From positions 13,577,133 through 13,641,132 of the forward strand of contig OZ037771.1 in the NCBI GenBank assembly GCA_964035545.1: a stretch of 64,000 nucleotides of DNA, in the 5' to 3' direction. The translations under genes were made by a program, and so were the position numbers. This document shows positions 16,221-64,000 of this stretch, in pieces (positions within the stretch are counted from its first letter, which is position 1; each line of letters opens with the position of its first letter). Under the pieces are notes generated by a model. That model ran no database searches, was not told where the DNA came from, and worked only from the letters and a program-made list of their open reading frames with translations. Source of the DNA: Bugula neritina (taxonomy: Eukaryota; Animalia; Bryozoa).

Positions 16221-19200
16221 ATGCGTAGCTGGAGCTTTTTATTTGTAAGTATTGTATAAATATTTTACGGGTAACTTGAAATTTTTATATGAAATACAAT
16301 TAGCACATGCAGGGTTATTCTGTTTATATTAAACAATGGCACAAATAATTCATTTAATAATGTAGTGCAAGTAAAATTTAAATACATAATAACGCACTTT
16401 GTAGGAATTGTATTCATTTAAAATAATATTATTATTTGCTTGTTATACATATTTAGATTGTGATATCCTTAACAGAATCGGTGCACTTTGTGCAAGCTGT
16501 GAAACCAAGGTAAATTATTAGTTATATTTATTTCTACATTATATTTCTATTTAGTATTGTAGTACCTAAACAACTACTATATTATATTATATTATATTAT
16601 ATTCAATTATTTAATTAATCAATTTATTGATCATATATAGATGTTATCATATAGTCAAACATTAGGATATGTATTATATAGTGCTGAAATTTAAAATGGA
16701 TTTTTAAAGTTCAAAAGTAAATAAGCTTTAAAAAGGATTAAAATGGAGAAAATGTTTTGGTTCATTGCAGATATAGACGCTTTCTAGTTAAACGCTATTC
16801 ATTTATTTTGGTACAATATATATTTTACGTGCAATCCATTTGAATATTATGTAATTAAATGTATGTTTAAATAAACTTAGATAAATTGTTTTCTATCAAG
16901 CACATAAATAAATTCCTTTGATCTGCATTAACTTATTAATATTGCAGATTCTTTATTTCCCATTGTTTGAAAAGAGTCTTTTGGTATTAAGTATTCATTA
17001 ATGTCTATTATCAATGTATTACTGCATGCTTGCTTGCTTAGCAAAAATTCACGAAAAGCAAGCTATTATTTCAGATAACTTATATTAGCTATTATAGCTA
17101 TTATAAGCATATTAGCTATTTAGCAATCAATACAACAGTTATATACATTATTATGGCTAAAAATAAAAAATAACGCGTATATAAGTTGGAAGCGTCCAAG
17201 TGGGAAATTAACCCTAGCGTCTATCTGGGATAAAACCAATTTTTTAGCTTATTTAGCAAAAATCCTTTCTATGTGGAGTAGGGAGGGCGTGAGGCATCTA
17301 ATAGACGTGGAGTCTATATACTTTAGTGAGTTTTTTTCTTTGCTAGAAGCTCCATACGTAACGACTTAATAATGCAATTAAATAGATCCCTAATTAACTA
17401 AAACCCTTCAGCTAATTATGTTATATTTCTAAGGTTGGGAATAAAAGCTGATAGTTTACCATGTTTATGTTTTCAGCATTTTATACAACGAGGAAGAGAG
17501 CTTTCTCAACACTAATGGTCCAGTTTTCCACATCGAACTCGATTACTATAAACGTGACGGCAGCCTTCTAATAGGAACCAACAAGCACCTCATAAGCACC
17601 GACGGTCTACAGAAAGCTAAACTAGCATCCTTCCTGGTGACAAGTTTCACGCAGAAGAACGCAACTCACGTGTTTGTAGTTGATCACTACAGACATTGCC
17701 TTAAAGTTCTCAACCGCGAGACAGATCAACTGAAGACCTTTGCGGGAACCTGCGTTACCAGTGGCTATGCTGAAGGGGGCGTAGGGAAGGGCAGACTTAA
17801 CAGACCGTGGGGTGTAGTGGTTGATGCTAGGAACCCAAACAGGCTTTTGGTAACTGATGAACTTAATCGTGCATTGAGATTTATTGACCTGAACAATGGA
17901 CACCTGGGAACCGAAAGTAGAGACGGCTTCTTTCATCCGAAAAGTTTGTTGTTTGCAGGAAATGATCTACTAGTGACCAACTATAATAGCGTTCTGAAAG
18001 TGAGCTGGTCCAATGGTAAAGTCAACAACATTCATCTGGCAGGAACTGAAAAGCAAGGCGATAGGCTTGGATCCTTTAATCAGGCTGCGTTTGGAGCCAT
18101 TATGAAGTTGGAAAAATTTAGCGACAATAAATATCTTATAGCTGATTACGGGAACAGAAAACTGAAGTTGCTGGACATGGAGAAGAAAACTGTGGGTGCG
18201 GTGTGCTTTAAAGATCAAACTATTGAGTGTAATTTTCCAGATAACCCATTGTCTATACTAAGTACTGGCGAAATACTGTATGTGGGCACCAAGACAGAAA
18301 TTCATAAGTTGACAGGTTAGTTGAAGTTACAAAATAGTTAAAAATATATACATTGTTCCATATTCTAATTCACTCAATAAATAAGTGAAATAAAAGATTA
18401 CTTTTGTGTGTATTTGTAGAAAAGTATTGAAAGTAGATGAAATTGCTGGTTTCTACTAAGTTTAAAAGTAAAATGAAAAGTTAGGAGTAAAAACTTTTAC
18501 TATAGTTTTAAATGCAAAAGTATAATAACCTATATTAATATTATATTTATATCGATCTGTAATACATCTTTAGATTTGTATTTAAATATAATATGCAAGC
18601 CTGAACAAAAATTCTAGTGTTTACAGTAGAGAACTAAACACAATAAATTAATTATAGTAGAAAATCTTAGATGCTGTGTTATTATCAGATACTTTTTTTC
18701 TGAAGATTGCTTAAAATTAATTAATTTGTAATTTATCACAAATTGATTAAATTATACTTATAGCTGTAAGGCATTGTTCTTTCACTTTGCAAACTGAAGG
18801 GATTTGTTAGTTGTAACAGAGTATTAGCAAATTAACAATGCCTAGGTATGGATCCCTTTGTTTGTTTGTTTCTGTGAACATGGCATGTTACATAATATGC
18901 TAACTTTTTTCAGAGTCTAAGGAAAATAAAAGACTTGTGTTTAAAGGAAAGTACGATGTTAGATGCCACATGATAGACTACACTAATTATAGAAGAGTAG
19001 CAATAGATAGCACTCTGGCAATGAGACGAGCACAACTTCAAGCAATCTGTGAAAAGCGTATGTATATCTGGGCTCATTGTAAGATCTTAAAATCATTGCT
19101 CGTAGCCACAATAGATACAATAGTGCCATGTTAGGTTTATCTACAACAGTTGGAGTCTGAGTGGAAGCAAACGTTTTATAGATTCTTCATTCAACTATCT

Positions 19201-19685
19201 ATCAAACATTTATTGGAGGCAAACATGCAGTTTAATTGTAACCAAGAGTTCTTTTAAAAAAGCTTTTTTGGAAACTTGCTTTAGCTAATTTAAATTTTTG
19301 AGCTTATAGGGCTGCAAGCAACAAAAATGCAGCTATTTTTTATATTGCCCTTTTCTTGTCAAATTCTATATTTACGTTAACAAATAAATTTTGTGAAACC
19401 GTGTACTTGAGACATCAAAGTATGTTAGCATATAGTTGGTCAACTTCTTTGTACGTGTATATATGTATGCGTATTGTGTTGTATTGTGTAGAATGCACTT
19501 TGTCTTTGATGATTCAACCGTACTACACATGTCGTGATGATCAGCTGACTATTTACTGGCCAACTGATCAGTTCTATCCTCCCAACACCCAAGAAGTGCC
19601 AAAGGAAATGGCAGAGAGATTAAAGATGAGATTGAGATTTTCAGAGCCTTTGAAGACCTTCAAGTTTTCCCTGGTGTTGTTATAG
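16221..19685 (+). CDS. Secreted NHL beta-propeller protein, paralog 1 (~417 aa, no HYR-like module)
   Basis: Exons 16221..16244, 16457..16509, 17477..18315, 18914..19057, 19492..19685; all GT-AG; total 1254 nt in frame. Hydrophobic start MRSWSFLFIVISLTESVHFVQA; NHL-like motifs AGTC..SGYAEG..G.GRL..PWG and LIADYGNRKLK. Confidence 0.85.
16771..17237. mobile_element. MITE, same family, left end truncated (intron 2 of propeller gene 1)
   Basis: TAGACGCTTTCTAGTTA..TTTATTTTGGTACAATATATATTTTA matches 2085-2137. Right end AAGCGTCCAAGTGGGAAATTAACCC..GTCTATCTGG. Confidence 0.75.
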
Positions 19686-21382
19686 AATTCGTATCCATAT
19701 TAGGCTTTTTTGCAATTAAGGAAAAATAAATTTGAAAAACAACACACTTTTTTTGCATAGGATTAAAAATTTATTAATTGGGAAATATTAAAATATGCAT
19801 ATCTATATTCTAGATTATAGTAAGGTCAAAAATGTTTCAAAAAGTAATTCTAGTTACTTGAATTTAAGGCAAACATAACATGTTTAGTTAAGCATTCATG
19901 CTTATTAAATTTATTTACCGTTTTTGCTATTATTTAAATTGATTAGCTATTAATATGGATACATTTGTGCTGTTTTTAATACTTGCCAATACAGCTGAAT
20001 GTTGCGGTTTTGGTTTATTTTATATTTATTATTTAATAAAATATATATTAATGAAATTATTTGTCCCTGGACTTTCCTTTTACTGTTTTTATATAGATTA
20101 TTAGCATTATAAGATAATTTAATAAAATTATAGAATGCAGTATTATGAAATATACATTAATACTATAAAATATATTGGGCATCTTATATAATTGTAGTAT
20201 AGTATATAATATGATATAATGAAATGTGATAAAATATAATGTAATTATATAAAACATGATGTATAACGGAATATATGATAAATATAATGTAACATAATAT
20301 TATATACAATACTGTAATAAAAGAAAATATATAAATATATTATAAACATGCATTATACTGCAACATAATATTCTGATGTATTAATATATAATCCAACATA
20401 TACTACAATATAATATATTGAAATATAATAATATAATAAAATGTAGTATATTATAATATTATAATACTAGGTTATAACATAAAATTACCTATACAACATA
20501 ATATACAATCTAATATGTAATATATTATACTAATATGCAGTATATTCTAAAAATATATGATGTAATATATTACATCATATATGTTCTAATATAGGTATTA
20601 TATTGTCACAAAACATTAAACTAAATAATACCATGCATATTAATTTGATATTAAATGTTACAAAATAATATACCATGATGATAAATAATTTAAAATAACA
20701 TGATCAAATATAATATATAATACAGTTATTGATATATTATAAAATTTTCTTTATACTCAATATAGTTATAAGCAAAATATACATATTTAAATTAATCAGA
20801 AAGTAATGTGAGTTGTCATAGTATATAGAACTAGTATTATTCTGATTAAGTATAGGTAAAAGGTAACTTTGTTATAATAGGCTATAATATACTATATTTT
20901 CTTCTCTATATAATGTATCTTTTGCTTTGTCCTGTTGGGGTAGCGAGAGGCTACAATATACTATATAATACTATATACTTGATAAGGATCTCCAAAAATT
21001 GCAGGAGAAAAATTTTATAAAAACTTATAATGCATATGTCATTTCAATATAATATGTATTTACAGCTTCTTCAGTTCTAAATTCTATAATAGAAAATGCC
21101 AAAAGCTGTTAAAATTTTGCTGCATGCGTTATTGGCAGCTCAAATATAAATATAGGTGAAAAATAGTAAAAGTGCATGAAAGCATTGGGACTTATAGTTC
21201 AATATGATGCTATATACAACATGCAAACTTTTTATCCCCAAATTATAAATTCTTGTTTTTCTGTCTACAGAAGCTATGGCAATTAGGTTTTTGAACTTTA
21301 ATTTTAATGGAAATCCGTTATCAAAATATAATGCTATATACAAATATGTATGCTTAGGTTTTCTTTTCTAAACATATAAAAG

Positions 21383-21578
21383 CTCACGCAAGTTTATAGT
21401 CCATATCCTCTTGAGAAAAATGCGCTGAAAAAAGTTTTTGAATAATGCAGGCTAAGTACTTGTTTAAATGAGGCACAGGGGCAATTATAACTGCAATTAA
21501 CTTTTTCTAACATCACCAATGGCCCTGGTCTGGCTCGAACAAATGACTTTATGTTTACTAAGCAAACACTCTAACCCC
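21383..21578 (-). mobile_element. SINE family 1 copy
   Basis: CTCACGCAAGTTTATAGT...AATGAGGCACAGG.GCAATTAT...TAACATCACCAATGGCC...GGCTCGAAC. Confidence 0.85.
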
Positions 21579-21912
21579 TCTTTTGTAAACATATATTAAA
21601 CAATAACGTGATTTGCCAGCGACCTTACATTACTTAGTTGATTAACTTATAAGATTTGTATGCAAAACTAACTAAATATTTGATATAATGCAAGAATTTT
21701 CTTTTATTGCAATAATAACAAACGCTACGAAATTGATACTTCAAACGTGCAAAACTTGAAAATAATAGCCTTTACCTCAACTTTATCATCTGAACTGATG
21801 CTTAGCAAGCCTTGTAATTATAGTAATTTATATATTTACAAGTTATCTCAACATAGAAGAAGAATATGGTGTTAGACTGAATTAGCTACTGCAGTCACTA
21901 TAAACTGTGGAT

Positions 21913-24418
21913 ATGATGGCTTGGTGTTATTTTGTGATTGTGAGTAAAATAATCTTTTCATTTGTATACAAATTGGTATATATTAAATAACAGTTAATTA
22001 TATTTGTAAATATACTTAATAGTATAAATAAATATACATTTCATATAATAATTTGGAAAAAGTGAAGTAAAATTAAGTATTTATAATATTTTAGATTTTA
22101 TCAGCTTTTATCAAAGGACTAGAAGCTGGTTCAAACATCAAACCTGGGTATGATATTTAGTATCTCCTTCTAAACAATATATCGCATTCTATAATTTATT
22201 ATAATATTACATAATTAAAATGTTCTTTTCAGGCTGTTATATGTTATCTAAAACAATTTTAGTTGTTATAAAATTACAATACTTTAAATCATAATATAAT
22301 ATATATATATTTCGACCTAGCAATTTGAACATTATCTTCTTTTCATTTATTCGTTCATGCAATTTCTAAAACTTTATTTTGATTGTCATCTAATTTGCAC
22401 TGTTTTTAATAATATTTGTGTTTGTAGTATCTTATACAACCATGCTGAACTGTTCATCAAGACAAATGCCCCTGTTTTCCACATAGAGTTTGACCAGTAT
22501 AAAAGTGATGGCAGCCTTTTAATTGGCACCAACAATCATCTTCAAACTGCTAACATTAGACAAATTGAAGACCTGGCATCACTATTGGTAACAGGGTTTG
22601 CACAAGCGAATACAACACATGCCTTTATAGTAGACAACCAGAAGCACTGCATCAAAGTGATAAATAGGGAGAATAATCAATTGAGAGACTTTGCAGGAAC
22701 TTGTGGCACTAGTGGCTATGCAGAAGGTCGACTGGGTGTAGGCAGGTTCCATAAACCGTGGGGTATCACAGCTGATGTTAGAGACCCAGACAGACTTCTG
22801 GTAGCCGATAAGAGTAACCACGCTATAAGGTCGGTTAATCTGAGAACAGGAGAAGTGGGTACGCTGAGAAATAACGGATTTTACTTTCCTAAAAGTATGC
22901 AATGGGAAGGTCCAATCCTCATGGTGACTAACTATAACTTTATCACAATGGTTGCCTGGTGGACAAATGGAGAAGTTACCAACACTCACATGGCTGGAAC
23001 AAGAAAGAAAGGAGACACTTTTGGCCATTTTGATGTAGCTCAATTCGGAACTCTTACGGATGCAGAAAGAGTGAGAGAAAACCAATATCTTGTTGCTGAT
23101 TTTGAAAACAGAAAATTGAAAATTCTTGATATGATCAATGGAGTTGTCAGTCCGGTCTGCTTTAGAGGACCCACTACAGAATGTACCTTTCCTCACCAGC
23201 CGATTTCTATGTTGAATCTTGGCAATACTCTGTATGTTGGGACACAGAAATGCATCCACAAACTAACTGGTGAGTTAGACTAATTGTATAAAGTACATGA
23301 TAATAAGTTCTACATTTAGTCTCGTAAGTTTTATAAGCTAACGTGAAACAGTATATAATATTTTGAAATGCAGAAATAAGTTATAGATTTAAACATGAAT
23401 TGAATAATAAAAAAGAATTTTAGTTTTTTTGCAGTTTTATTTTAAACCCCAACTTTGTAAATTCAACTTTAACTATTGATAACCGTATTTAATAATCTTT
23501 TTTAATAATAATATATATTTTTATGCTTATTATTAGAGTTTCGAGAGGCGAGAAGGCTTTTATTCACTGGGAAGTATGATGTAGACTGTCATGAAATAAA
23601 TAGTGATAGTAACAGAAGACTCGGAATGGAAAATACACTGGGTAGAAGAAGAGCGGAACTCCAAACTGTCTGCGGATTTGGTACGTGTGAATAGAATTAT
23701 TACTAGTCATGTGTACACAACTCTTAACTAGTAAAACATAAATTTCCACAAGCTTGCGGAAGTTTTCAAGGAGTTCAAAGTATATCTGAATATAGGTTTG
23801 CAAAACTCTAATATATATAAAGAGGTCTCACTGTTGTGAATTGGGTTAAAACAATGATTCATAATTTGAGGGAAATGGTGAAAATCTAGTCTATAAAACT
23901 TCCTTATAGAAAATGCTTGAAAACACACATTATATGTCAGTAAATCAAACAGAAATATTAAAACGGTGATTCTAGGGATGAGTAACCATAAAATTATATA
24001 TCACTGCGCTCCCATATGGCTTCAAATAAAATTTCGTCGCTTAATTCAATTTGCATCAAATTTGCAGTGTATGAGTGGTAAGTTTAAATAGTGATAATGA
24101 ACTTTGAGCTGTTGATTCATGCTTCTACTTTCTAAGTCTTGCTTTGGTAGAGCTTTGAGTTTTAGTACCTAATAAGCTGTTTAACCAATGACAGTCTTTC
24201 TTTATTTAGACTGCATAATGTCGCTCACATTGCAACCTTCATACAAGTGCTATGAGGACCAACTGACTGTGTATTGGCCTACAGATAAGATTTTTCATCC
24301 AGAGACTAAAGAGTTACCAAAGCCATTGGCAGACAAGTTACAACATGGAATTTATCAATCAGAAACTCTAACGAATGTTGGTATTTCCTTTGAGCTGTCT
24401 GAAATCTTTGTTTTGTAA
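21913..24418 (+). CDS. Secreted NHL beta-propeller protein, paralog 2 (~424 aa, no HYR-like module)
   Basis: Exons 21913..21939, 22095..22147, 22428..23269, 23537..23680, 24210..24418; 1275 nt in frame; same intron phases as paralog 1. Confidence 0.87.
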
Positions 24419-25842
24419 AAATATGCAAAATAATTAAATTTTGTTACAATTATAATAAGCATATGGAAGAAAATTATACATGTTGAGGGTTGACAATAAT
24501 AATATAAGCAATGGACTTTGTTGTTTGTTTGCTAATAATTATGATTTTGCTTAGCTATATTTACATAAATAGGCCACTATATAATCATATAAGATATTAA
24601 GGTATTGGTACTGTTGGTGTTTCTAATAAAATTGTAAAATATATGAAAAATATATCTGCATTAACAAATATATAATTCAAATCATAAAAAGAAGATCTTA
24701 TATAATGTTTTGCAAGGTTACATTATATATATACATAGCTCTTAAGTTAAAGTTAACAAAGTTAACATTTGATTTATAATGTTTTTGGGACATTTTGGGA
24801 GTAATTGAATGATTGAAGTTCAAACACATTTCTCAACAGCTTTGAAGTCAAGAGAACACAATCCCATACTGTAATGATGGCCATGATGGGGAGATGTGTG
24901 AGTTATTACACACAGCCAGTTGCAAAAAGGAAATTATTATATAATTATTGTTACTTACAATAACACCCCTGATGCACTCTACCATAATTTGAATCTATAT
25001 AATAAATATGTCATAAATTACCCACAACTGGGTGGGTCTGAGTCTTTAAGCAAACTGCGTGGTGCTGCACACACTAATAACATGTTATGTACTTCTTACA
25101 TAATAAAAATGAATGTTAAGTATATAAATGTACTGTTTAAGATATTGCATAAACAACCTACCTGCTGTATAGTGGCTTAACTCTTATCATTATGGTTGTT
25201 TCTAAACTACTAATTATATACGAATCCACCCAACTGTAATTGTTTGTTATTAGTGTGTCAAATGCTGGCTCAAATCAGTACACCACAAAAACGTACATAG
25301 CTAGAAAACTGGTTGACACTGGAAAACTGGCATAATGCTTATTGTTTAGTCTCATATTTTTTATCTTAGATTTAGGTAAATAAATTGCATGTCAATTTTA
25401 AGTTATGTTTCATATAAATAATGATACAGTAATATGGTTTAATATTATATTGATGGCAATATATATTCAGTTTTGGTATAGGTTAAAACATTTTCAGTAG
25501 CATTAGGATAGATAACTCCAGCTTTTCAGCACAAAATAAAATGCATGCAGTTTCACATTGAAATAAATATTGTAATTGATATTAAGTCAACATTACCATT
25601 TAATACCTGTGTACTATATAGTATTATTATAAAATTATAGCTGGAAACATTTAAATTATATCGTGTGGATTACAGTAAGAATAGGTATTAGTTTTACACA
25701 GATTATAGCTGTATGCACAGAACTCATACAGAGGTTTACACATTAGTTACTGCATGTAGAGTGTATTGGACATTAATACCATATACATGCTACTGTGCAT
25801 CAAAGAATAAAGGTGCTTTTACTTAGCTGTGTATATTATACA

Positions 25843-26270
25843 CAGGGTTAGGGTAATTGTATTTGGTTAAAATTAATTACATTTTTTTTCAAGTAATTGA
25901 CGTATAGAAATGTGATTTTAATTAATTGCATAGCTAATTAAATTGATTTTTACAACTACGTTATAATATTACTTAACAAGTTTTTCAAACTTTTAAATCT
26001 TATAGAATTCATACTTTTTCTATCATGCCTACTGGTTAATAAAAAATTTAGATTAACTAAATGTGATTTTGAATCACCCTATTATTGGCTGTTGCGAACA
26101 AAATAGTTGAACCCCAAGAGTCAGATTATGCAACTTCTATTTACCCCTTGTGAGAACAAAAGTAATTGTAATAAATTGCAATAATTTTAGATTTAATTAT
26201 GATCATAATTGACAAATTTTCATGCTATTGTAATTACAATTGCATTCATATGTAATTGACCCCAACCCTG
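25843..26270. mobile_element. Non-autonomous DNA element with CAGGGTT(A/G)GGGT termini
   Basis: CAGGGTTAGGGTAATT at 25843 and AATTGACCCCAACCCTG at 26270 are inverted; repeated GTAATTG/AATTAC subterminal motifs; no clean TSD. Confidence 0.7.
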
Positions 26271-26531
26271 AATTACTACAATAGTAGGTTTTTCTGTTTG
26301 ATTATGCAGACTAAGGTACTTTAATTGTACACTTTTATTAATATTTGAAAAGGACACAGAGTTATAAACGTATTTCGAGTCTTTTAGGTAATCAATTTAT
26401 TGATAGAACAATTATTAATTAAATTACAGCTGCATTTCCTATCCAAAAAAATTGAGCATTATATAAGGTGAAGAATTACTTAAATGAAGATATCCCTTGC
26501 GACATCATTGTGCATATAGTAAAAGAGTTTC

Positions 26532-29500
26532 TTAAACACAGACATCCCTTGCGACATCATACGACTTTCTGTTATTAGCACAGGCTGAGTAAAGAGTAAC
26601 TTGAACAGCTTTGTTGTTTGCACCCTTTGCAGCAGCAATCACCCTGGTAAAAGCAGCTTATACTAAAGCAACAAAAACTAGTTCTATTTAAAACATTAGC
26701 AGGACATACAAAAACTCACTCAAGCAAGTTTATTGTAGTTGCTATCCCTGTGAGAAACCCCTGATGAAAAAGGTTTTTGTTAGAACAGGCTATAAGAACT
26801 TTTTAAATGAGACACAGGAACAATTATGACTAGATGCTCTTTTTAACATCACCAATGACCTTTACTAGCACTTGAACCCATGACTTTGTGTTCAATAGGC
26901 AAACGATTTGACCCCTAGGGCCTAGACCATGCTTAGCATAATATACAAGTCAACCTTTAATTAATGCTGAACACATTAAAGAACTTACGGAGGGCTATGA
27001 TACAGAATAAAGATCTCCATGTTTATCATGGAGTCAATTGCTTCAATTCGCTGTTCCAGTTGGTTAACCAGTTCCGTAGGTGGCTGATGGACATCTATAG
27101 GGAACATGACGTCTGTAGGCCAGTACACAGTCAGCTGACCGTCTGTGCACTCAGAGAAAGGCATCATGTTGTCTGACATAGTACAATCTATAGAATAAGA
27201 CAAATAATTATTACTCTCTTTGCACTACCTTTCTATATATAATAAAAGACACATTCATAGCTTAGCTTTAGAAGTTACCTTCTCCACACACGGTCAGGAG
27301 TTGAGCTCTTCTATGGAGCAAGGTGTTTCTGAGCACAATTCTGGTGTCTGAATCGTATTCTAGCAGATTGCATCTTACTTCATATACAGACTTAAATGAC
27401 AGCCTTCTTACAATGGGTGATTCTACAACATGCAGTAACCCTAGTATCAACAGTAATACATATATAGCTGTATACAGCATCATACATAATCATGACACAT
27501 AGCTTTATATTATATATAACACCACACATAGCTTTATATTATATATAACACCACACATAGCTTTATATTATATATAAAACCACACATAGCTTTATATTAT
27601 ATATAACACCACACATAGCTTTATATTATATATAACACCACACATAGCTTTACATTATATATAAAACCACACATAGCTTTATATTATATATAACACCACA
27701 CATAACATCAGTAGTATGATACAAAAAATGGATAAAATTTAGTTGGAAATGTTTGATACAAGAAAAAAATTCTTTGTTAAAACAGTTGTCTAAGTTTGGT
27801 ATATTTGTATAAAATGTAAATTTGGAAAATAAAGGAATTGTATTTATTTTGATAACTTACTCATTACATTAAAGTGTTCTTTACAAAGCAGAGAGCCATG
27901 ATCTTTTGGCAGAGTGTATTGACCTTCTGAAAGGTCAATAGTGAGTCCATTATCTAGACTGAAGGTCAACTTGCGACGACCAGGGATAATGTAGACGGTT
28001 GCATTTCCACTGTCAGGGCACTCCACGGGAAAACCAATCTCTGAACTCACACCTGGATAAAATGAAAAATTTTCTTGATAATTTCAGACTCTTAAATTTA
28101 AACAGAATAAAGCTGATGATGAAATTTATCATTTATTTTGTACAACATAATATTTTCTTCCAGAATTGTGTTGACTTGAAGTTCATTTAATATCTAATAT
28201 ATATTACATAAATTCTACATAATGTTGCATTTATCTGCATTTCAACAGTTTAATAGATACTAGACATGCTAACCTTTCAGCTTATATAATGCTGTTGAAA
28301 GTGCAACGTAGATTGTTTCATCTCCTAATTTGAGCATTGGAGCTTTAGTGGCTGGTCTTGGGAGAGCACTGCTATTAGTTGTACAATTATCTTCCTGATA
28401 AATACAGAAGGGTTTTACACGTCCTTCATTAAAATCTACCAGCTTCAGTTTTCTACTTCCTGTATCATCAACTAGAAACATCTTTTCTCTCAATCTCACA
28501 AGATTAGAACTTCGTCTGACTTTGGATTCATCGGTTGTTCCATAGACATCACCCGGCCGTGAAAAAGCAACTTTATAGTTGGCAATGGTTCCGTTATCAA
28601 ACCATCTCACACTTGAAATGTAAACATTATTGGTTACCAGGAGATGATCGCTTGCCCACAAGAGTCCTAGAGGCATTTCAAACCCGGAATCAATCACTGT
28701 GCGTACTTCCCCTGTAGAGATACTTACAGACCTCAGAGCATTGTTTGCGCTATCTGTAACCAGAACTTGACCTGCATTCCTAGTGTCAACCACAACAGAC
28801 TTCGGATTATCAAATTTTCCAGTACCTATAAGTCCATCAGAATAACCAGAGGTACCGCATGTTCCAGCTAGAACCACTATGTGGTTGGTGACTCTGTCCA
28901 ACATTCTAAGACATTGATGCCTGCCATCTATTAACACCACATGTGTGGCGTTAATCTGTGCAAAACCGTGTATGTCCATGGAGGGTGTGAGAGCCCAAAT
29001 ATTGTTTCCGTTGGTTGTGATAAGACCGGTAGCTGTACCAATGAGAATCTGGAAGTTGTACAGATATCTGTCTACATCCATGTGATGTATAACGGAGGAA
29101 AGATTCAAAGGGTTGTTGTCTAACACATATATCATTTTGGAAGAGCTAAAATAGAATACTATCGTAAATAAAATAAGAATACAATTTTAAAGAAAGCTAA
29201 CTATATATGATGACATAACAGTTGAATAAACATGAGCTGCTAATTACTATTTGTTAGTTGTCTACTCTAGCAGCACAAGAGCTATACGCAGCAAAAATTA
29301 ACTTTTTTTATTCATAATTTAGAGAAAGAAGAAGGTTCATGAAATATTTAATGTTTTTTAAAATTATAATGAAAGTTTACAGGTAGCCTACTTTTCAAGC
29401 AAATATTTAAAAGATTGCTAAAAAAATATTTCTAATAGAATCGACATATATCAATAAATTTTGATTTTGGATTGATAAATTTTCTTCTGGCTATGATAAT

Positions 29501-39200: not shown

Positions 39201-39231
<31 letters not shown>

Positions 39232-44357: not shown

Positions 44358-49189
<4,832 letters not shown>

Positions 49190-53000: not shown

Positions 53001-54586
53001 TGGTGTTGTTGAGCTAATGATTATAGTGTTTGTCACTGTATTATCTTCTAGCCATTCTACTAGACTTATGTAATTACCATAGTTAGTTACTATTAGCTGA
53101 TCTCCTGCCCACAAAAGGTTCCGAGGAAAGTTGAAACTCCCATTTAAAACAGTACTCAGTTCTCCTGTGCTTAAATCTAGAGATCGCAATGCATGATTGT
53201 TTTGATCTGATATCAAAACTTTGCCATGGTTTCTAACATCTAATATTACTTCAAAAGGGTGATTGAGTTTCCCCACCCCCACTCCTCCTTCTACATAGCC
53301 CTTGGATCCACAGGTTCCTGCAAGGGTCTGTATGGTTTCAAGGTTTCTATCTAACATCTTAAGACAGCTGTGGTCATAATCTATTAGAGCAACATGAGTT
53401 CGATCCACCTGAGTGAATCCTGTAGAAAGGATGTTGGACACGAGAGTTTTCCTTTCATCTCCGTCAGTAGACATCAAATGTGGCCAGGAACTTACCAGAA
53501 TGTTCTTGCAACCATGGTTGTATTTATCTAGCTCCATGTGGTCTACAGCCAGGTCTGTTTCCAGGAACAGCTCATTGTACTCATAGGAAATACTGAAAAT
53601 AAGTCAGAAATAGAAGTTAACAGATATTCTTAGCAGTTAATTTGCATTATACACATGCAGATAAAGAGTTGAAGAGCTTCCTAGCATTTTAAAAATATAA
53701 AAAAATTAGGACACTCAAAATGATAGCATAAGGTGGAATTTTCATGTTGTACTGTGCTATACATTGAATATTCATGAGTTTTGATATCACTATGACATAA
53801 ATAAGCAGTATCTTGTATCACCAAATCAAAAAATTATTGCCTTTTAAATGCAGAATGATGTTTTTTGACTGTGCAGACTTCTTGTTTTGCACATTTCATT
53901 TATGAAACATTTTGATTTAAATAATCATGGGATTCAAATTTAAAATTTAATTTAAAATATAGTCACCTTGATTGGGAAGATTTGACTCTTTTTAATAGAA
54001 CAGCTAAAATCTACAATGAAGTTATAGAAGACAGTTACAGTGTTTAAAAATTCAGAACAAAGCTAATTATTATAGTATATTTCTAGCTTGAAATATGTTA
54101 ATTAGACTTCATGCTTTAAGTATACCTTAAAATATATAATTATCACATTCTATTATAATTAAACTTTTGAAACCAATAAATTTCCTTTTGATTTTTTATT
54201 TTCTTCAATAATAAAATATAAATTACTATATATTCATATATTACATTATGTTTTATTATAAGCCTTAGGGTAACCATAATCAATTAATAAGATATATGAC
54301 CTCAGTGAATAAAAACTCAATAGCTATCTCATATATTATTAGTATTAAATATTAATGCAAGTGCAAACTAATTATTATTTTTGTATACTATAAAGCAAGT
54401 ATACATTATTTATTGGCTTTTGACGTATCAAACATAATAAATTCTTTTTTAATCAAGCATACCTCTTTTGATCTTCAAAATTTAGCAAAGCATAATTGAG
54501 GAAAGAGAAACGTATGTATAACACATCAAATAATGTACAAATATAACACTTACCGTGAGATGAAACAAATTTTTTATTATTTTCAT
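50049..54586 (-). CDS. Secreted NHL beta-propeller protein, paralog 7 (~583 aa, two HYR-like modules)
   Basis: Exons 54586..54554, 54010..53967, 53592..52733, 52594..52424, 52074..51904, 51346..51200, 50728..50515, 50160..50049; 1752 nt in frame. Confidence 0.85.
52140..52423. repeat. Degenerate TATACTCACTA tandem repeat
   Basis: Repeated (TA)TACTCACTATA units filling the intron between the two HYR-like exons of paralog 7. Confidence 0.85.
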
Positions 54587-56542: not shown

Positions 56543-59500
56543 CTAAGCACAGGTGTCCGTAACTGCATCATATTTCTGGGACGTGATAGTACAGCTGGAA
56601 TGAAGGAAAACTTTCACATAATCTCCCTTAGTGTCTTGCTTGGCCTTTATCATCCTGTTCATAATAATCAGCCAGTCAGTTATTGAAATAATTATAACAT
56701 ACAATTTACACTATCTGCTAAATGGATATGCTTCATTATTATAACTTATCAACTGTTTTAAATAACCATTATATATGGTTCCTGCAGAGCTTAATGCTGG
56801 TAAACCATCAATCAGGTATAACTAGTATAACTAGTAATTTACTGCTGGTTAGGAAGTTTCAATTTGACATGTCGCAATTCATGCTTGAATAACATTAGCA
56901 CAAATGAAATTTGTTTTTACACTGGATTATTGACAAAAATTTATGTAACTTCTGTTTTAACTTTAACTTGGCTTGACTTCTAAAATATAAATAGTGATGC
57001 GTTGCAAATCTCTAGATGCAGCACAAATGAGGTAATTAAGTTGTTTACAAGTAATCTATGAATAAACAATACTGGTACTTATATAACCTCATACTATGTC
57101 ATTTAATATAGGGTGTTATCTTGCAAACACTAACAAAACTTTTCAACTGGTGTAATTTCAAAGGTGTTAAAAAAAGATACTCAAGTGACAGATGTAATAA
57201 TATTGGTTTAATGCGAAATGACGTGCCACAAAGCCTAAAATTTGTGGCCTGTAAGAAAAATTATGCAATCAAAACAGGCACTTACAGTAATGTTAATTTT
57301 GGACAAAAAGCTTTGAATATTGGAATAGCATATAAATCAAACAAAGCCTAGCTTTAGAAATTTTAAATAAACTGCGTTATTATAAATAAAATCTATAGCA
57401 GTGCTTATCGAATTTAAAAAATATATATATAAATATTTTAAGCAATTAATATACACAATTGAACTTACGGTGGCTGATGAAAAGGGACAAAGAATCCAAG
57501 GGTTTTCATTATATAAGAATTATTCAGCTTTTCCTTGACTTTGCCCAAGACAACTTTGGGAGCCTCTTTGGTGTTGACGGAATAAAAGTGGTCAGCTGCC
57601 CAGTGAACTTTTAGCAAGTCGTCTTTACATTCGTAGACAGGATCTCTTGTTACGGACATGGTGCAGTCTACTCAACAGAGCAGCAGAGAAATGTGTTACT
57701 GTGTCGTATAGACTATACATGATTTTTATAGGTGAAAATATGTGCTGGTAAAAATGACACAAATAAAAATTAGGTATAAATTGCAAACTGCATGATGTCA
57801 AACTTTTCCAAACCTTAATATTGAAACCATGCCTTTTTTACCTACTTTTCCATTTGTGTTGCTTTTACCTGCACAAATGTTACCGGTGTCATTTTTACCA
57901 GACACTACTATAAACAGCTGTTTGCTAGACAGGGGAGCATTTATGGTTTAGGGCTTAGAAGTCTTAGAGCAATGGGCTAGTAAACATAGGGTCATGAGTT
58001 TGATCCTCTGTAAAGGCCATTGGTAATGTTAGGAAGAGTATCCAGTCATAATTGCTCCTGTGCCACATAGGGGTAAGTTCTGAACCCAGTTTAAAAACTT
58101 TCCCATAAGGGGTTCTCACAGGGATATAGCAGCTATAAACTTTCAAGAGTCAGTGAGTTGTTTGTTAGACACAGAAATGAATTGTAGTTTAGAGTTGAAC
58201 ACCTGTTCTACAAGCTTCCTGGATGTGATCTCTTCTGCGAACCAATGACCTCTTCAAATTGTCCAGAAAGCTAACTTTCTTAAGAAGGTCACATGTCGCG
58301 TCGTATTCGGATTTGAAGTATAGTCTCCTAACAATCGGCGATTCTAAAAATAGGCGTTGATTCTTTCGTTTTAAAATAACAAAAAACAGAATGATTTTCA
58401 TTTTATGCTTACATTAGGGAACTGGATTTGCATTTTGAATTGATACGTAATAATATGTTAGCAAGCTACAGTTTGACTATGCATGTATTGCTGTATGAAT
58501 AAAAAGAACAATATATTATTTCCCAGTCATAAATTTTTTTCTACAGGGCAGAATAAATTTACAGTAGGCTTATATAAATTTTTTTCCTGTACTAAAAAGT
58601 TAGTTTAGCTTGAGGTGAAATTTTACACAGGTAAGTTATGAATTATTGGCTGAAAAATTAATTAAAACATATAATATAGCTACACCCACTTTTCACAACG
58701 TGGTCATAGTAGCACGTCTTTGAGTTGTGCTCTGTGGTTTTTCTATGAACTCCTTCTGGCAACAACTCAGATTTGCCATTTGACCATTCTACTTTCACCA
58801 CATATTCTCCCGGCGTTAAAACTGTGGTGATGTTTTGGAATGGGCATTGTTCATGATCAGTGCCATCAATATCTGAAACACAAGAAAATGTTACTATTTT
58901 GAAATAGTGAACAATGATTTTAGATAAATATTGCACAGGTAATAATGGCACAGGTAATAATTGCACAGGTAATCATGGCACAAATAGAAATTTATCTAGG
59001 TAAAAATGGCAAACTGATGTTAAATGTTCCCAAATCCCAAACCCAATAGTACTCAATAAATGCATCATAAAAAAGATTTTTTAATTATTAAAAATAGTTT
59101 TTATGCAAAATTTTAGGATGGATTTGAAAAAGATATTTTTTAAGATACATAATTAATTATTAAACTTGGCAATCGAATGAGTTTGACGTTAAGTAATTAC
59201 CAAAACTGACTTACTTGTGACGGTAATGTAGTAAGTGCACATTCTGGAGCTGATGTTCTTTGTCATTGCAAAAACTCCCACCGGGAATTCTACTTCCTGG
59301 TCATTTGGCAGCTTAATCTTGACTGTTTGTTGTCCAGTGGGCAGGATAGCTGTTACATTATTAGGGCAGTCTGTCAGAGTTGCTTTCTCAGCAATTTTGC
59401 TGTCTTCTACACCAACAAGAGGGGATAAGTCTAATGCAATGCAACTGAAAATGAGTTCAGGAATCACTTTATTGCATTTAGCAAATAAAATTACGGTACT

Positions 59501-61716
59501 TTTATTCATTTTTTGTTATAAAACAATTATTAGATTCACTTTATTTGTTGAGCAACTGTTGATATATAAAATGTTAGTTAGTTAGTGACTAACCTTGAAC
59601 AATGACGTAGTAAGTGCATTTTCTGGGGCCGTAGTTCTTGGTCAGCGTAAAGACTCCTGCAGGATATTCTACTTCATGTCCACCTGGCAACTTTACTTTA
59701 GCAGTTGTCTGACCTTCCATAAGCGAGACGGTGATATTTTTGGGACATTCTCCGAGGAGAGCTTTCCCAACTGAACTGCTTTGAGCTAAAAATTATACCA
59801 TCTCTATAATAAAATATGCAAAACTGTGCACATTTTATATTGCCCAAGACTCTAAAATATTTTATGTATTTTTGTTGTTTTGAGCATTTTTATAGATATA
59901 ACTAATCAAGTTTGGTTTTTAAATAAAATACTGCTCTAAGTTGTCAAGCACTAATTACCATTTTACAATAACTTCTCACATATTATGTATATACTTACTT
60001 ATAAATTTATTTGTTGATCAACTGTTGATATATAAAATTGAAAGTTAGTGACTAACCTTGAACAATGACGTAGTAAGTGCATTTCCGGGGACCATAGTTC
60101 TTGGTCAGCGTAAAAACTCCTGCAGGATATTCTACTTCATGTCCACCTGGCAACTTTACTTTAGTAGTTGTCTGGCCTTCCATCAGTGAGACGGTGATAT
60201 TTTTGGGACATTCTCCAAGAAGAGCTTTTCCAACTAAACCGCTTTTAGCTAAAAATAATACCCTCTCTTTATAATAAGATATACAATCTTGTGCGCATCC
60301 CATATTGCCCAAGACTCTACAATGTTTAATGCACTTTTGTTGTTTTGAGTACTTCAGTTTTTAAATAAAATTTGTCAAGCACACCATTGGTATTTACCTT
60401 TATTTTTATGAGAATAATGTTCAATTATGTAGTATAAATATTCAACTTACCACTCATTTTGAAAATGCCGGTTTTTGATCCCAGATAGAGGCTTCGCCCA
60501 GCAAGTAAAACAGACACTGGTTCTTCTGGACTGTCACAGCTGATACTATCAGAATCACCATCTTCTTTCTTGAAACAAACTGGACCAACTGCTTTTTTAT
60601 CTAAGTCTATAAACTTCAACTTATTGTTACCATAATCTGTGACAATAAACACTCTGTCTCGAAGTTTCACAGCACCAAACAATGTTCTGAATCTGGCCGC
60701 GTTGAAATTACCAAGTATGTCACCTGGTCTACCTGCATCGCCTGTCAAGGTATGTGTTTTAGCCGCACCATCTAACCAGCTTACTCTCGAGATATGATAG
60801 TAGTAGTTAACTACCAGCAAATGATTACCATCCCAAACTGTACCCCGGGGAGTATCAATGTTTGTATGAACCACTGTGGACATCTCTCCTGTGAAAAGAT
60901 CGATATTTCTCAACGCATGATTGCCTTCATCGGTAACCAGCAGAAAGCCAGGTTTCTTAATGTTGGAGACAACTCCATAAGGGTATCTCAGCAGTCCTTC
61001 CTCTATTCCTCCATCTCTGTTACCTTGGCTACCACATGTTCCAGCAAGGGTTTCCACACTACCGGTAATTCTGCTAAGGATTTTGATGCAATGAGCTTCC
61101 CGATCGGCAAACACTACGTGATGCGCATTGATTTGTGTGAAGCTGACTACAGACATGTTGGACACGAGTGTATGGGTCGTATGGCCATCGGTTGTTTTCA
61201 GACCTTTGATTGTACTGAATAAGATACTTTCTCGTTTGGTTCTGTGGGCATCAACCTCCATGTGGAGCACCGGGTAGGTGGTGTTGACAAAAAGCTTATT
61301 ATGGTGGTAGACGACTCTATAATATTAGTCATACATAAAGACAATAAATTATTTAGTGTTCAAAGTATAAAAATTATGATTCTACACTTATCTAGTTGCA
61401 AGTTAGCAACAATGTATAATATCATCATTAGCATAGACATGATAAAATGAAAATATATAAAGAAATAAAAATAAAAATTTGTTATTGTTACCATATTTGA
61501 AAAATTCAAACAGTATATTAATTTTAAACTTGCCTTGGTGGAGCATTTTCTGCCGATGCAGTGCAACTTGCAAAAGCTACTAAAACCTAAAAGATAAAGA
61601 ATAGTATTGTAACAACATAATAATAGATTCCTTTTATTTATTAAATACAAATGTTATTCAAGTTATCATTATAAAGCTGAGAAAAAACTTACAACGAGTT
61701 GCCACAAACGCTTCAT
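56543..61716 (-). CDS. Secreted NHL beta-propeller protein, paralog 8 (~725 aa, four HYR-like modules)
   Basis: Exons 61716..61693, 61586..61534 (GC donor), 61316..60451, 60248..60057, 59785..59594, 59430..59215, 58872..58690, 58343..58203, 57667..57469, 56654..56543; 2178 nt in frame. Confidence 0.85.
57730..57906 (-). mobile_element. GGTAAAAATGGCACA-family MITE-like repeat
   Basis: Ends GTCATTTTTACCAGACAC, the reverse complement of the GTGTCTGG(C/T).AAA end at 721. Confidence 0.65.
57925..58155 (+). mobile_element. SINE family 1 copy, plus orientation
   Basis: CTAGTAAACA...AAAGGCCATTGGTAATGTTAGGAAGAGTATCCAGTCATAATTGCTCCTGTGCC...TTCTCACAGGGATA. Confidence 0.85.
59539..60380. repeat. Recent 463-bp tandem duplication containing a whole exon
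   Basis: Exons 59594..59785 and 60057..60248 and their intron flanks (TTTATTTGTTGA.CAACTGTTGATATATAAAAT; ATATTGCCCAAGACTCTA) are near-identical. Confidence 0.95.
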
Positions 61717-63208
61717 CTTTACTTCTGACAATTTCTTGCAAGATACATACATACATATCAACATCTTGTTTATCAACGTACTTAGTCTACAATTATCTCG
61801 TTGATGCTAAGTTGTGTAATAATACAGTTTAGATATTAGGTGTCTGGTTTTAATCATCAGATAACTTTAGACTACCATTATTATACCTATTTATAGACAT
61901 TTATGCATAAACTGTAATTTTAGTTATGGGAGGTAGTTTTATCAAGAAATAACATAAAATTAGAGTTAAATCTTGCAAAATACTAACAATCATATCTTAT
62001 ATTACAATTTCAAAGGTATATTCAAGCTTAATTACTGTTTTACCACAAGCTTTAACTAGCTAGCTGATTTTTTGTTTGTTATATATTGTGTATATTATGT
62101 AGTATATACTGTTACTAAAATCAAACACATATCTCAGATATTGTTTTGTACTGTAGAGGAACAGCCATATAAAACAGACATTATAATTATATAGCTAGGT
62201 CAACTATCCAGTGAATTATAATAATCACTATAAACAATAAGGATATTTATTACATATTCAAGCATTATAGGGGGCTGCTTTCAAGTTGCTACTATAGCTA
62301 ACAAACCACACCTAATTTCTGATAGAGAAGTTATTTTAATAATAGGTAGTTATTGTAACATAAGTTATTTAGCCAAATTAAATAAAAATCATCATGTTGC
62401 AAAAATGACTGTATCATTAAAACATCGCAGTTTTTTGCAATCAATGTACGTATTAGCAAAGATTTATCAATTTTTATTTAATATAAAAGAAGCTTACATT
62501 TGTTGACAGTAATTTAAACTTCTCTATCAACTATAGAACGCCCTGCTTTTTGCTATCATTTTGCTGTCATTCCATTATAACAATGCTGCCAATAAGCACA
62601 CACTCAGATGTCTTTACTGTCAGCCTAAATTCAGGTACATGTCATTTAGAAGCTCAGCTCCTGCTGTCCTTTTCTTTACACAAACCACTAATACAGGGTT
62701 GTGTTTAGTAAAATTTAAATCTAAATGATAGCACTTCCACAAGTTGACTAGGTACAGAAGTTATAATAATAAGCATAATAATCTGTATTTAATTACTTGA
62801 ATAATATGATTATCTTATATACTTTGGTATCTAGGAGCTCCTTATAGATGTTGAAAAGATTTGGTGGTTCAGGGCATTGTTTTTGCTTTTAATAACAACT
62901 TGTTGAGAATCATAAAGTTTAAGGTTCATGAAGTTAACAAATTTTTTATAACTAATACTTATAACCTCAGGTATGTTTACAACTTACCAGAAATAAATTT
63001 ATTTTAAAACTTGAGCATTCAGCTATTTATTATATTCAAGAGTAATTAGTAATTAATAATACTAATACAACAGCAAAATAGACTTGGTAGTAATAGCTAG
63101 TTTGCATAGGCAAAAACTAAGTGTTAGAATATTGAAAGCCACGAATAATGCATTTATCTACAACGACATGGAAAGCATGCAATCTTGTGGGTGAGTACAA
63201 TGTTAGCA

Positions 63209-64000
63209 CTACTGAAGAACTAAAGTTACTGCCTGTTCAAGATGGTCCATCCTTGCTTGTATTATTCTGAAAAGGAAAGTTGAAAAGGTGTTGTCAAAGG
63301 ATGAAATGTAATTGCAGACATTTAGTGCACATTATCATTAAATAAATCAGCATGATATATCAACAATTTTAACCAAACCTACTTTATACAAAATTTCAAT
63401 AGCGTGAAAAGTTCAATTCACATTGAATTAAATCATGTGCTAACAAAATTATTGTTGGAAGTTACAAGAGTTGGGAAAGCTTTTCCCTAATTCATTATAG
63501 CTTTTCATGTATCATCACAGCTATATCAGCTATAATATTATGTTTTTTTCTATACACTCATATTATAGCTAACCTTTTTGACTGCAGGTATAAAAACCCA
63601 ATATTTTCACTTATATTTACACTTGCAACTTGCAACTATGCACTTATAACTTATGATGCGTAACAGTTTTTTCACATTGCTATTTCTTTTTATTTTGGCA
63701 CAATGAATAATTCTATATGCCAAAAACACAACAATTATAATTATGTATTTATAATAATGCATTAATTAGTTGATCCTAATTAAAGTAAAATTCAAAAATA
63801 TCTTTATTTACAAAAATTTAGAAATATTTTGTGAATTAAATTACTTAACATTTGAAATGCAACTTACGGAGGTTGGTGAGAAATGACGTAAATCTCCAGA
63901 GTTTTCATTATTTCAGTCTCATTTATTTTTCTCCTCAGTTTTCGAGAAAGACGATCTGAAATTGTTTGTGTGTTGGAAGGGTATGTTATGTTGGTTGGCC
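63209..64000 (-). CDS. Paralog 9, 3' part only (continues beyond the window)
   Basis: 64000..63868 reads (W)PTNITYPSNTQTISDRLSRKLRRKINETEIMKTLEIYVISHQP(P)|GTAAGT, homologous to the YWP exon. Candidate last exon 63266..63209 IIQARMDHLEQAVTLVLQ*. Confidence 0.7.

Follow-up and report, generated by a model that had tools for sequence, protein, structure and literature searches.

A tandem cluster of predicted secreted NHL-propeller proteins in Bugula neritina and its place in a candidate bryozoan binding repertoire

Propellers of the NHL type in known systems and in the cluster

Teneurins, which are large type II membrane proteins, surround a six-bladed NHL propeller with EGF repeats, a YD shell and a toxin-like (Tox-GHH-like) C-terminus, and the propeller serves outside the cell in specific protein recognition. 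The TRIM-NHL ligases (TRIM71/LIN-41, TRIM2, Brat, Thin) carry the same fold inside the cell, downstream of RING, B-box and coiled-coil regions. Bacteroides proteins labeled "auxiliary nutrient binding" (4hw6, 3hrp, 3tc9) are lipoproteins with an N-terminal Ig-like domain and an extracytoplasmic NHL propeller that is presumed to bind ligands. Invertebrates also possess expanded repertoires of secreted recognition proteins, such as the FREPs of snails and the C1q-domain proteins of bivalves. To our knowledge, almost nothing is established about the molecular means by which bryozoans recognize microbes, symbionts, or other colonies. Bugula neritina hosts a bryostatin-producing symbiont.

We analyzed a stretch of 64,000 nucleotides from the B. 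neritina genome (contig OZ037771.1), hereafter the window, in which diverged paralogs that share an exon plan lie in a tandem cluster at positions 16221-64000. The protein architecture is a signal peptide, a six-bladed NHL propeller, zero to four small two-cysteine beta modules, and a tail domain. The original prediction described at least nine paralogs with eight complete models. Nine loci do carry family exons, but HMM and tblastn searches located the propeller exon (839-872 nt) at only seven of them within the window, so that neither nine propeller genes nor eight complete models could be retained. Those seven genes combine a propeller exon with tail-domain exons within 1-4 kb in the same phases, which is how we defined membership.

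The propeller assignment was supported by sequence and by modeled structure. Pfam NHL (PF01436) matched all seven propeller exons, three of them reaching the 20-bit cut-off, and phmmer against the PDB returned the NHL domains of SOQ1, Thin, NHLRC2, and TRIM71 (E 4e-13 to 5e-5). The AlphaFold2 model (pLDDT 95.7, pTM 0.92) contains 24 strands and matched solved six-bladed NHL propellers in Foldseek with probability 1.00 and TM 0.63-0.76. The domain is confidently predicted to be a six-bladed NHL fold with four antiparallel strands per blade. Glycines, cysteines, and hydrophobic core positions make up most of its invariant residues, and an N-x-T sequon is invariant as well.

The window proteins resemble teneurins in having a six-bladed NHL propeller that would lie outside the cell. 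However, it directly follows the signal peptide, and no teneurin was among the listed PDB sequence or fold matches. We rejected teneurin membership because the models contain nothing beyond signal, propeller, modules, and tail domain and show no stretch resembling a transmembrane (TM) segment. TRIM-NHL proteins share the fold and the NHL motifs (E 1e-5 to 1e-9, TM 0.63-0.70) and also a style of family, with tandem expansion and variable loops on one face. The window genes instead encode a signal peptide upstream and extracellular cysteine-rich domains downstream, and TRIM-NHL membership was rejected since only two short signal-peptide exons precede the propeller exon. In the spliced relatives P0027 and P0068, the propeller likewise begins at once after an N-terminal signal peptide. 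Other NHL-type propeller exons of this genome are only 22-29% identical to the family and may belong to TRIM-NHL arrays. The Bacteroides proteins were the top Foldseek matches (E 3e-11, TM 0.68-0.76) but are only 13-15% identical, and there is no sign of shared ancestry beyond the NHL superfamily.

We infer secretion from a hydrophobic N-terminal signal spread over two exons, conserved cysteines, a conserved N-x-T sequon, and the lack of any TM-like stretch. The signal exons and a Kyte-Doolittle scan, in which the maximum 19-residue mean of the window proteins was 1.27, agree with the predicted signal-peptide-bearing proteins without a TM segment. Richness in N-x-S/T sequons, also predicted, applies to genes C-G and H (4-8 each) but not to A and B (1 each).

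Exon plan, genes and domains of the cluster

Exon 1 of the cluster genes measures 24-33 nt and ends in phase 0, and exon 2 measures 41-53 nt and ends in phase 2, confirming the proposed split signal peptide. The propeller exons of A to G are 839, 842, 872, 860, 860, 860, and 866 nt long, and all seven have a phase 2 acceptor and a phase 1 donor (..G followed by GT). Module exons are in phase 1-1 and about 171-192 nt long; the exons 3' of them measure about 144, about 184-214, and 112 nt in turn. The shared intron positions and phases of the original prediction hold for the seven propeller copies, but a 112-nt terminal exon was not found for A or B, nor within the window for I. The reading frames of A and B meet a stop where the ~190-nt exon ends. 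As predicted, the copies are intact yet strongly diverged: the reading frame stays open through all seven propeller exons and every small exon, and pairwise propeller identity is 34-54%.

Genes A and B lie on the forward strand and lack modules. Gene A (16221-19685) comprises signal exons at 16221-16244 (24 nt) and 16457-16509 (53 nt), a propeller exon at 17477-18315 (839 nt), and tail exons at 18914-19057 (144 nt) and 19492-19685, the last running into the stop. Gene B (21913-24418) has the same layout, with signal exons at 21913/21916-21939 and 22095-22147 (53 nt), a propeller exon at 22428-23269 (842 nt), and tail exons at 23537-23680 (144 nt) and 24210-24418, again running into a stop. Its joins and end are matched by the NCBI B. 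neritina protein EB796_001027 (P0068, 423 aa).

The remaining genes lie on the reverse strand. Gene C (26532-30414) has signal exons at 30388-30411/30414 and 30237-30277 (41 nt), a propeller exon at 28274-29145 (872 nt), a single divergent module at 27861-28052 (192 nt), and tail exons at 27279-27422, 26989-27187, and 26532-26643 (112 nt, with stop). Its propeller-module-tail joins are borne out by B. neritina EB796_018209 (P0021). Gene H (32440-35447) has no propeller exon, and no remnant of one was found between 35448 and 37118. It consists of modules at 35277-35447 and 34084-34257 and tail exons at about 33424-33543, 33153-33339, and 32440-32551 (112 nt, with stop), with a candidate 24-nt first exon at 36068-36091. 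Other propeller-less relatives are known (P0025).

Genes D, E, and F each carry two modules. Gene D (37119-43642) has signal exons at 43619-43642 and 43102-43145 (44 nt), a propeller exon at 40708-41567 (860 nt), modules at 39892-40062 and 38982-39161, and tail exons at about 38385-38522, 37562-37748, and 37119-37257 (139 nt, with stop). Gene E (44358-49189) has signal exons at 49166-49189 and 48847-48890 (44 nt), a propeller exon at 47146-48005 (860 nt), modules at 46839-47012 and 46473-46646, and tail exons at 45592-45735, 45095-45287, and 44358-44469 (112 nt). In gene F (50049-54586), signal exons at 54554-54586 (33 nt) and 53967-54010 (44 nt) are followed by a propeller exon at 52733-53592 (860 nt), modules at 52424-52594 and 51904-52074, and tail exons at 51200-51346, 50515-50728, and 50049-50160 (112 nt). 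B. neritina EB796_018213 (P0020) confirms how F joins its signal exons and its three tail exons.

Gene G (56543-61716) has signal exons at 61693-61716 and 61587-61630 (44 nt; less certain, with a weak donor), a propeller exon at 60451-61316 (866 nt), and tail exons at 58203-58343, 57469-57667, and 56543-56654 (112 nt). Of its four modules (60057-60248, 59594-59785, 59215-59406, and 58690-58872), the first two arose by a recent 463-bp tandem duplication. Gene I (63868-64000) is cut by the window end and shows the 3' part of tail exon 2, with a phase-2 donor; no terminal exon was found within 61720-63867, and its propeller exon lies about 4 kb past the window end (G000:C7:13645026-13645862).

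The modules had been called "mini-HYR," a label that stands at the level of pattern. Like HYR, they are all-beta, begin with C-P, and end with C-x-[YF]-x-V-x-V. However, they span about 55 residues against 81 in HYR (PF02494), and they lack the D-x-x-G-N motif of genuine HYR exons in this genome. The Pfam HYR model detected 10 such exons elsewhere in the genome but none of the six modules scanned (hmmscan, E up to 10). An hhalign comparison with the genuine exons gave 50% probability (E 1.6e-4) over only 35 columns, aligning the second half of the module to HYR positions 40-79. The likeness to HYR is thus a pattern-level resemblance whose homology is unproven.

The original prediction listed the three small 3' exons correctly (~144, ~190-200, and ~112 nt) but missed that they encode one distinct ferredoxin-like domain of 150 residues that has six cysteines, or four in the case of A and B. 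This tail domain belongs to no Pfam family; in P0020, which contains it whole, no Pfam model including SEA (PF01390) matched at E up to 10. It produced only 47 matches among 1.84 billion proteins, the named ones all uncharacterized bryozoan proteins from Bugula and Watersipora, and it also occurs fused to EGF repeats. The domain is apparently restricted to bryozoans and previously undescribed, and it seems to be a phylum-level invention. Its predicted fold faintly recalls SEA and alpha-dystroglycan S6-like domains, which are extracellular ferredoxin-like alpha/beta sandwiches of about 120-150 residues. However, the six conserved cysteines are foreign to SEA domains, which moreover adjoin a membrane, whereas the tail domain sits at the C-terminus of a soluble protein. 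VIA-align gave Z 4.7-6.1 to five SEA-domain chains, against the tool's stated background of Z 7-8. The best structural neighbors were MUC16 SEA (6.1, 5.1, 4.9), dystroglycan (6.1), and TMPRSS6 (5.5), but ribosomal S6, ACT, and GGDEF domains scored the same. Foldseek returned nothing at E 1e-3 or better. Because these fold matches are at background level (Z ≤ 6.1), no function can be read from the tail domain.

Family size, splicing and loop evolution

Genome-wide searches gave 108 matches to the propeller exon. About 80 of these are close to full length, and stops are absent from almost all. The searches also gave 87 matches to the tail exon, located together with those to the propeller. The family comprises about 85-95 genes in this genome, of which the window holds nine neighbors; as a measure of the family, "at least nine" was far too low. 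The same domain order is found in proteins of B. neritina and Watersipora subatra, and in database sequences the family has so far appeared only in bryozoans. Every named relative is labeled a "hypothetical" or "uncharacterized" bryozoan protein, and our literature search found no paper on this NHL-propeller family. These results uphold the view of an unnamed, lineage-specific family.

The modeled exon joins agree with independent spliced proteins of the B. neritina annotation (P0020, P0021, P0068) and with a paralog mRNA contig. The latter, P0027, is a 1925-nt single-ORF contig from run SRR4125604, whose alignment to this genome falls into seven blocks at a paralog locus, among them blocks of 41, 860, 172, and 136 nt flanked by AG/GT. 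Transcription and splicing are thus demonstrated for a paralog rather than for a window gene. Public B. neritina gene models of the family are often truncated or mis-spliced.

Variability was shown to concentrate in the B-C and D-A loops, on one face of the modeled propeller. Entropy reached 2.65 in the B-C and 1.97 in the D-A loops, compared to 1.54-1.85 for the opposite face and 1.1-1.7 for strands, with loops assigned to faces by strand order in the predicted model rather than by coordinates. In nine independent recent duplicate pairs, all outside the window, pooled dN/dS was 1.23 in the B-C and D-A loops, 0.42 in the A-B and C-D loops, and 0.47 in strands, with equal dS. Nonsynonymous and synonymous counts differed between the B-C and D-A loops and all other codons (Fisher P = 7e-11). 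Because the test against neutrality across the nine pairs is only marginal (P = 0.07), relaxed constraint on these loops is a possible alternative to positive selection. The window copies, at 34-54% identity, are too diverged for the duplicate-pair test.

The window genes are collinear with counterparts in another Bugula lineage (a draft B. neritina assembly), with proteins 92-95% identical and dS 0.2-0.3. Ortholog dN/dS was 0.12-0.14 for propellers and 0.08-0.25 for modules and tail, with no excess change on the variable loops. All five exons of H are conserved in B. neritina (dN/dS 0.10). The window genes, H included, are old paralogs under strong purifying selection (dN/dS about 0.1-0.2). 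Such a mode of evolution, with a burst of change after duplication and then long conservation of each copy, is distinct from that of hyperpolymorphic receptors.

A candidate repertoire, its rivals and its nearest counterparts

We place roughly 55% probability on the reading that the window is a slice of a bryozoan family of secreted modular proteins forming a germline binding repertoire, diversified after duplication and then fixed. The propeller would be the binding head, contacting ligands through the B-C and D-A loops. New specificities would arise by tandem duplication and fast amino-acid change on that face, and each would afterwards be held by purifying selection. Modules would act as spacers of variable length, and the constant tail domain may provide a common docking, oligomerization, or effector function. 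The likeliest targets would be ligands outside the cell that are non-self or come from the environment, for example microbial surfaces or glycans, making this a humoral recognition repertoire.

Among the alternatives, the proteins could be structural or adhesive matrix components (of cuticle, or larval or colony adhesive), with propeller and modules as cross-linking or scaffold units instead of specific receptors. We regard this as unlikely, although the secreted, disulfide-rich, glycosylated architecture suits it, as do the HYR-like modules (hhalign 50%), HYR being present in matrix proteins, and the faint likeness of the tail fold to SEA and dystroglycan S6-like domains (Z 4.7-6.1) of matrix and mucin proteins. 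By eye, the exon translations show no low-complexity, repetitive, or biased adhesive-type composition. Some 90 strongly diverged paralogs, with change on one face and each copy separately kept under purifying selection, would be unexpected for bulk structural proteins. An adhesive role as such is neither supported nor ruled against.

That the proteins are secreted six-bladed-propeller enzymes (peptidyl-hydroxyglycine lyase-like, or lactonase/strictosidine-synthase-like) is improbable. Such enzymes exist, and Foldseek listed gluconolactonase-family structures at the low ranks of 41 and 43. By both sequence and fold, however, the propeller matches non-catalytic NHL domains best. The invariant propeller positions contain no conserved histidine or acid cluster, and the most variable positions lie where an active-site entrance would be.

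Allorecognition determinants controlling colony fusion or rejection might be sought in a large, tandemly arrayed, extracellular family with a variable surface, in a colonial animal whose allorecognition genes are not yet known. We consider this improbable because the counterparts in the second Bugula lineage keep their order at dN/dS 0.12-0.14, variable loops included, and at 92-95% protein identity (dS 0.2-0.28), the opposite of hyperpolymorphic balanced loci; the window proteins also lack a membrane anchor. Of the recognition or adhesion roles in the original prediction, recognition fits the one-face variability and the raised dN/dS of recent duplicates, while allorecognition is disfavored. 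Finally, a decaying duplicate array or gene-model artifact, suggested by the missing propeller of H, the missing last exon of A and B, and frame breaks in the orthologs of B, C, and G, is already largely refuted by the open exons, the ortholog dN/dS of 0.08-0.25 (0.10 for H), the paralog contig spliced as modeled, and the confinement of the frame breaks to the draft long-read B. neritina assembly, since they are absent in the window.

Within the preferred reading of a germline binding repertoire, a more specific proposal is tentative, and we hold it as a possibility on the doubtful side: a cheilostome-specific humoral recognition class of ~90 secreted NHL propellers, with one-face specificities minted after tandem duplication and long conserved, and a bryozoan-specific six-cysteine tail that links them all to one shared downstream partner. 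If true, the class would amount to an immune or symbiont-management system without a described counterpart in other phyla. About 90 intact genes with a confidently modeled predicted binding head, a defined variable face, and a constant tail offer a starting point for bryozoan recognition. Snail FREPs and bivalve C1q-domain proteins offer a parallel. The bryozoan proteins differ from them in having an NHL propeller as the putative binding head in place of a fibrinogen-related or C1q domain, but they would share the pattern of dozens to hundreds of tandem, secreted, germline-encoded paralogs that join a variable binding head to more constant accessory domains.

Gene structure and locus content

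Exon families were defined from stop-to-stop ORFs, a six-frame all-against-all ORF comparison, and HMMs built from the copies, which gave five families in the window. The propeller exon occurs seven times, in every case with a phase-2 acceptor and a phase-1 donor (..G/GT). The module exon (13 copies, phase 1-1) encodes ~55-60 residues with two invariant cysteines. The tail is encoded by three exons: the first of ~144 nt (eight copies, phase 1-1), the second of ~184-214 nt (nine copies), ending ..CC/GTAAGT in phase 2, and the third of 112 nt (six copies; 139 nt in gene D), which holds the stop codon. Two short exons lie 5' of each propeller, one of 24-33 nt beginning with ATG and a hydrophobic one of 41-53 nt. 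For several small exons and the propeller donor of G, splice boundaries were set by hand from polypyrimidine tracts and database proteins, and some of those of the ~144-nt and module exons are approximate.

The exon sizes of the original prediction were accurate, while its count of nine paralogs with a propeller exon was too high, as the window has only seven. Locus H (32440-35447) consists of two modules and a tail without a propeller or a remnant of one, and locus I is truncated at the window end, with its propeller ~4 kb beyond. Scans of 35400-37200 for a propeller exon of H or a trace of one, and of 61300-64000 and 1-16220, gave no match better than E 0.16. The ~112-nt last exon, which had been predicted for all copies, is missing from A and B; an HMM and a pattern scan found no such exon for A, B, or the part of I inside the window. 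Genes A and B stop inside the ~190-nt exon, and the NCBI model of the B ortholog terminates at the same site.

Module number varies from none in A and B to one in C, two in D, E, F, and H, and four in G. Two of the four in G come from a recent 463-bp tandem duplication (59580-59889 vs. 60043-60354), in which the whole module exon is 91% identical, with one amino-acid difference, and the flanking intron 77% identical. This duplication illustrates how module number shifts.

Evidence for real, maintained genes

The window exons were searched singly, and five database proteins (P0020, P0021, P0025, P0027, and P0068) served as spliced proxies. The joins are reproduced by spliced proteins of an independent Bugula neritina annotation. 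EB796_001027 (P0068) is a full B ortholog, EB796_018209 (P0021) is the C ortholog and runs from the propeller end through the module into the tail, and EB796_018213 (P0020), a mis-spliced F ortholog, retains the join between the two signal exons and the three tail joins. P0027 is a 520-aa protein encoded by a single-ORF contig of 1925 nt from run SRR4125604, and its propeller is 92% identical to that of a paralog on the window's contig (C7:14594849). Against this locus the SRR4125604 contig falls into seven blocks of ~124, 41, 860, 172, 136, 213, and 343 nt, and those boundaries that resolve cleanly show AG/GT. The predicted exon joins are matched by this spliced mRNA, which is that of a paralog 1 Mb away and comes from a related lineage.

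Compared with their B. neritina orthologs, the D, E, and F propellers have dN/dS of 0.12-0.14, and values for modules and tail exons in C, H, D, E, F, and G are 0.08-0.25 (dS 0.2-0.3). These values exclude a pseudogene array. The five exons of H have a dN/dS of 0.10, so H is a maintained propeller-less gene and not debris; other propeller-less relatives are annotated, such as P0025, which has a signal, a module, and a tail. Based on the annotated joins, the paralog mRNA, and the ortholog dN/dS, the window gene models are real genes.

Several NCBI family models in the public B. neritina assembly (GCA_010799875.2) are truncated or mis-spliced, EB796_018213 among them. In sequences L053 (9340-10207 and 15938-16779) and L054 (2519-3381) from its contig VXIV02002708.1, the C, B, and G orthologs match piecewise in differing frames, and D, E, and F match cleanly. 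The frame breaks are explained either by indels in the assembly or by pseudogenes specific to that lineage.

The window DNA is AT-rich (~30% GC) and belongs to a 216-Mb assembly; its protein matches assign it to B. neritina or a close relative. It is collinear with GCA_010799875.2 over at least 22315-37585, with only ~75-83% identity in non-coding DNA and a synonymous divergence of 0.2-0.3 between the window genes and their B. neritina orthologs. The window genome represents a lineage distinct from the public one.

Several other features lie in and around the cluster. A 3.77-kb direct repeat (1-3765 and 12667-16401, 93% identical) flanks a TPR/nucleotidyltransferase gene at 8688-12218 (+), one open frame of 1177 codons in which TPR repeats come after an N-terminal region resembling a nucleotidyltransferase. 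The repeat also copied the first exon of gene A, leaving an orphan exon and GTAAGT donor at 3581-3604. A dispersed element of ~200 bp, probably a short non-autonomous transposon, occupies introns and spacers across the cluster (4056-4255, 21376-21579, 26718-26918, 37837-38006, 40253-40318, and 57964-58150); the B. neritina contig has a copy to which these are 73-85% identical. Intronic tandem repeats occur in gene C (27495-27704, seven copies of a 29-nt unit) and gene E (a 17/38/55-nt AT-rich array at 44475-44888 and an (AG)146 microsatellite at 46046-46336).

A recognizable propeller joined to a distinctive tail

Pfam NHL matches the propeller exons weakly, yet in all seven, and phmmer against the PDB retrieved the NHL domains of SOQ1, Thin, NHLRC2, and TRIM71 with E down to 4e-13. 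An AlphaFold2 model built on a 52-sequence alignment (pLDDT 95.7, pTM 0.92) has 24 strands forming six four-stranded blades, and its best Foldseek matches are six-bladed NHL propellers (TM 0.63-0.76). Membership in the TRIM-NHL or teneurin families is ruled out by the architecture.

The module follows the consensus C-P-x-x-N-I-T ... G ... C-x-Y-Y-V-x-V and is modeled in P0025 with five strands (pLDDT ~75). Neither the modules nor the tail domain matched a family in Pfam or NCBIfam. Genuine HYR exons are present elsewhere in the genome, and profile-profile comparison with them reached 50% probability across 35 columns. The term “mini-HYR,” under which the modules were first described, fairly describes the pattern but does not reflect an established relationship.

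The three small 3' exons encode a single domain, a beta-alpha-beta-beta-alpha-beta sandwich with extra strands (model pLDDT ~90). It has six conserved cysteines, two per exon, and takes a four-cysteine form in A and B. Foldseek of the tail/module model against the PDB gave no match at E 1e-3 or better, and the ESM Atlas gave no usable match for the tail, its own model of the domain being poor. Exhaustive structural alignment of the tail reached Z ≤6.1, under the background of the tool, to a dystroglycan S6-like domain, several SEA domains, and generic ferredoxin-like folds. When a tail profile was run over 1.84 billion representatives, just 47 proteins matched, mostly exon-sized metagenome ORFs; the named ones are all uncharacterized proteins of B. 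neritina or Watersipora subatra, and we take one match, a bacterial repeat protein, as spurious. From these searches, the tail domain appears to be nearly absent outside bryozoan sequences. The Watersipora protein aligns collinearly with P0027, starting in the final propeller blades and continuing through to the tail, so the propeller and tail architecture is common to two cheilostome lineages. Another match of the profile search (P0030, 242 residues; L002, JGI 3300032616, 1214 nt) joins EGF-like repeats directly to the tail domain; the tail is thus mobile and combined with other heads as well.

Family expansion, loop diversification, and interpretation

Genome-wide, there are 108 propeller-exon matches, ~80 of them full length and nearly all without stops. 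The ~190-nt tail exon has 87 matches, and a propeller lies a few kb upstream of every one. Large clusters lie at 13.37-14.67 Mb on the window's contig and at 23.9-33.3 Mb on contig C2. A separate tandem sub-cluster of ~12 copies (C2:24670706-24853344) has propellers that match those of the window from residue 57 on only, at 28-33% identity, each with a tail exon ~2-3 kb downstream; these copies form a deeply diverged subfamily.

Median identity among 47 paralogs is 46%. We assigned loops from the strand order in the propeller model, and entropy is highest in those linking strands B-C (2.65) and D-A (1.97), which lie on one face, compared with 1.54 for A-B, 1.85 for C-D, and 1.1-1.7 for the strands. 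Pooled Nei-Gojobori estimates from nine independent pairs of recent duplicates, which share 66-86% identity and all of which lie outside the window, gave dN/dS of 1.23 for the B-C/D-A loops, 0.42 for the opposite loops, and 0.47 for the strands, with equal dS across the three classes (0.175-0.19). The B-C/D-A loops differ from the rest at P = 7e-11, but reach only borderline significance when tested for an excess above neutrality (P = 0.07). The window genes are old paralogs (34-54% identical), and a comparison of the two Bugula lineages shows their loops under the same constraint as other parts of the propeller. The pattern is one of early diversification of new duplicates, with each copy then conserved over the long term.

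The best-supported reading takes the family as a repertoire of germline-encoded, secreted binding proteins, for which we infer both secretion and binding. The B-C/D-A face of the propeller would carry specificity, the modules may act as spacing units, and the tail could be a constant domain for partner binding or assembly. Roles in structure or adhesion, or as enzymes, are minor possibilities. Allorecognition, one of the roles first proposed, is disfavored because the orthologs are collinear and strongly constrained. The family is uncharacterized, as originally suggested: its database relatives carry no functional name, a literature search found no description of it or of run SRR4125604, and NHL proteins go unmentioned in a proteomics paper on biomineralization. 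Returning to the repertoire of binding proteins, we class it among the expanded invertebrate repertoires of secreted recognition-type proteins, as a case in which the head is unusual and the tail new.
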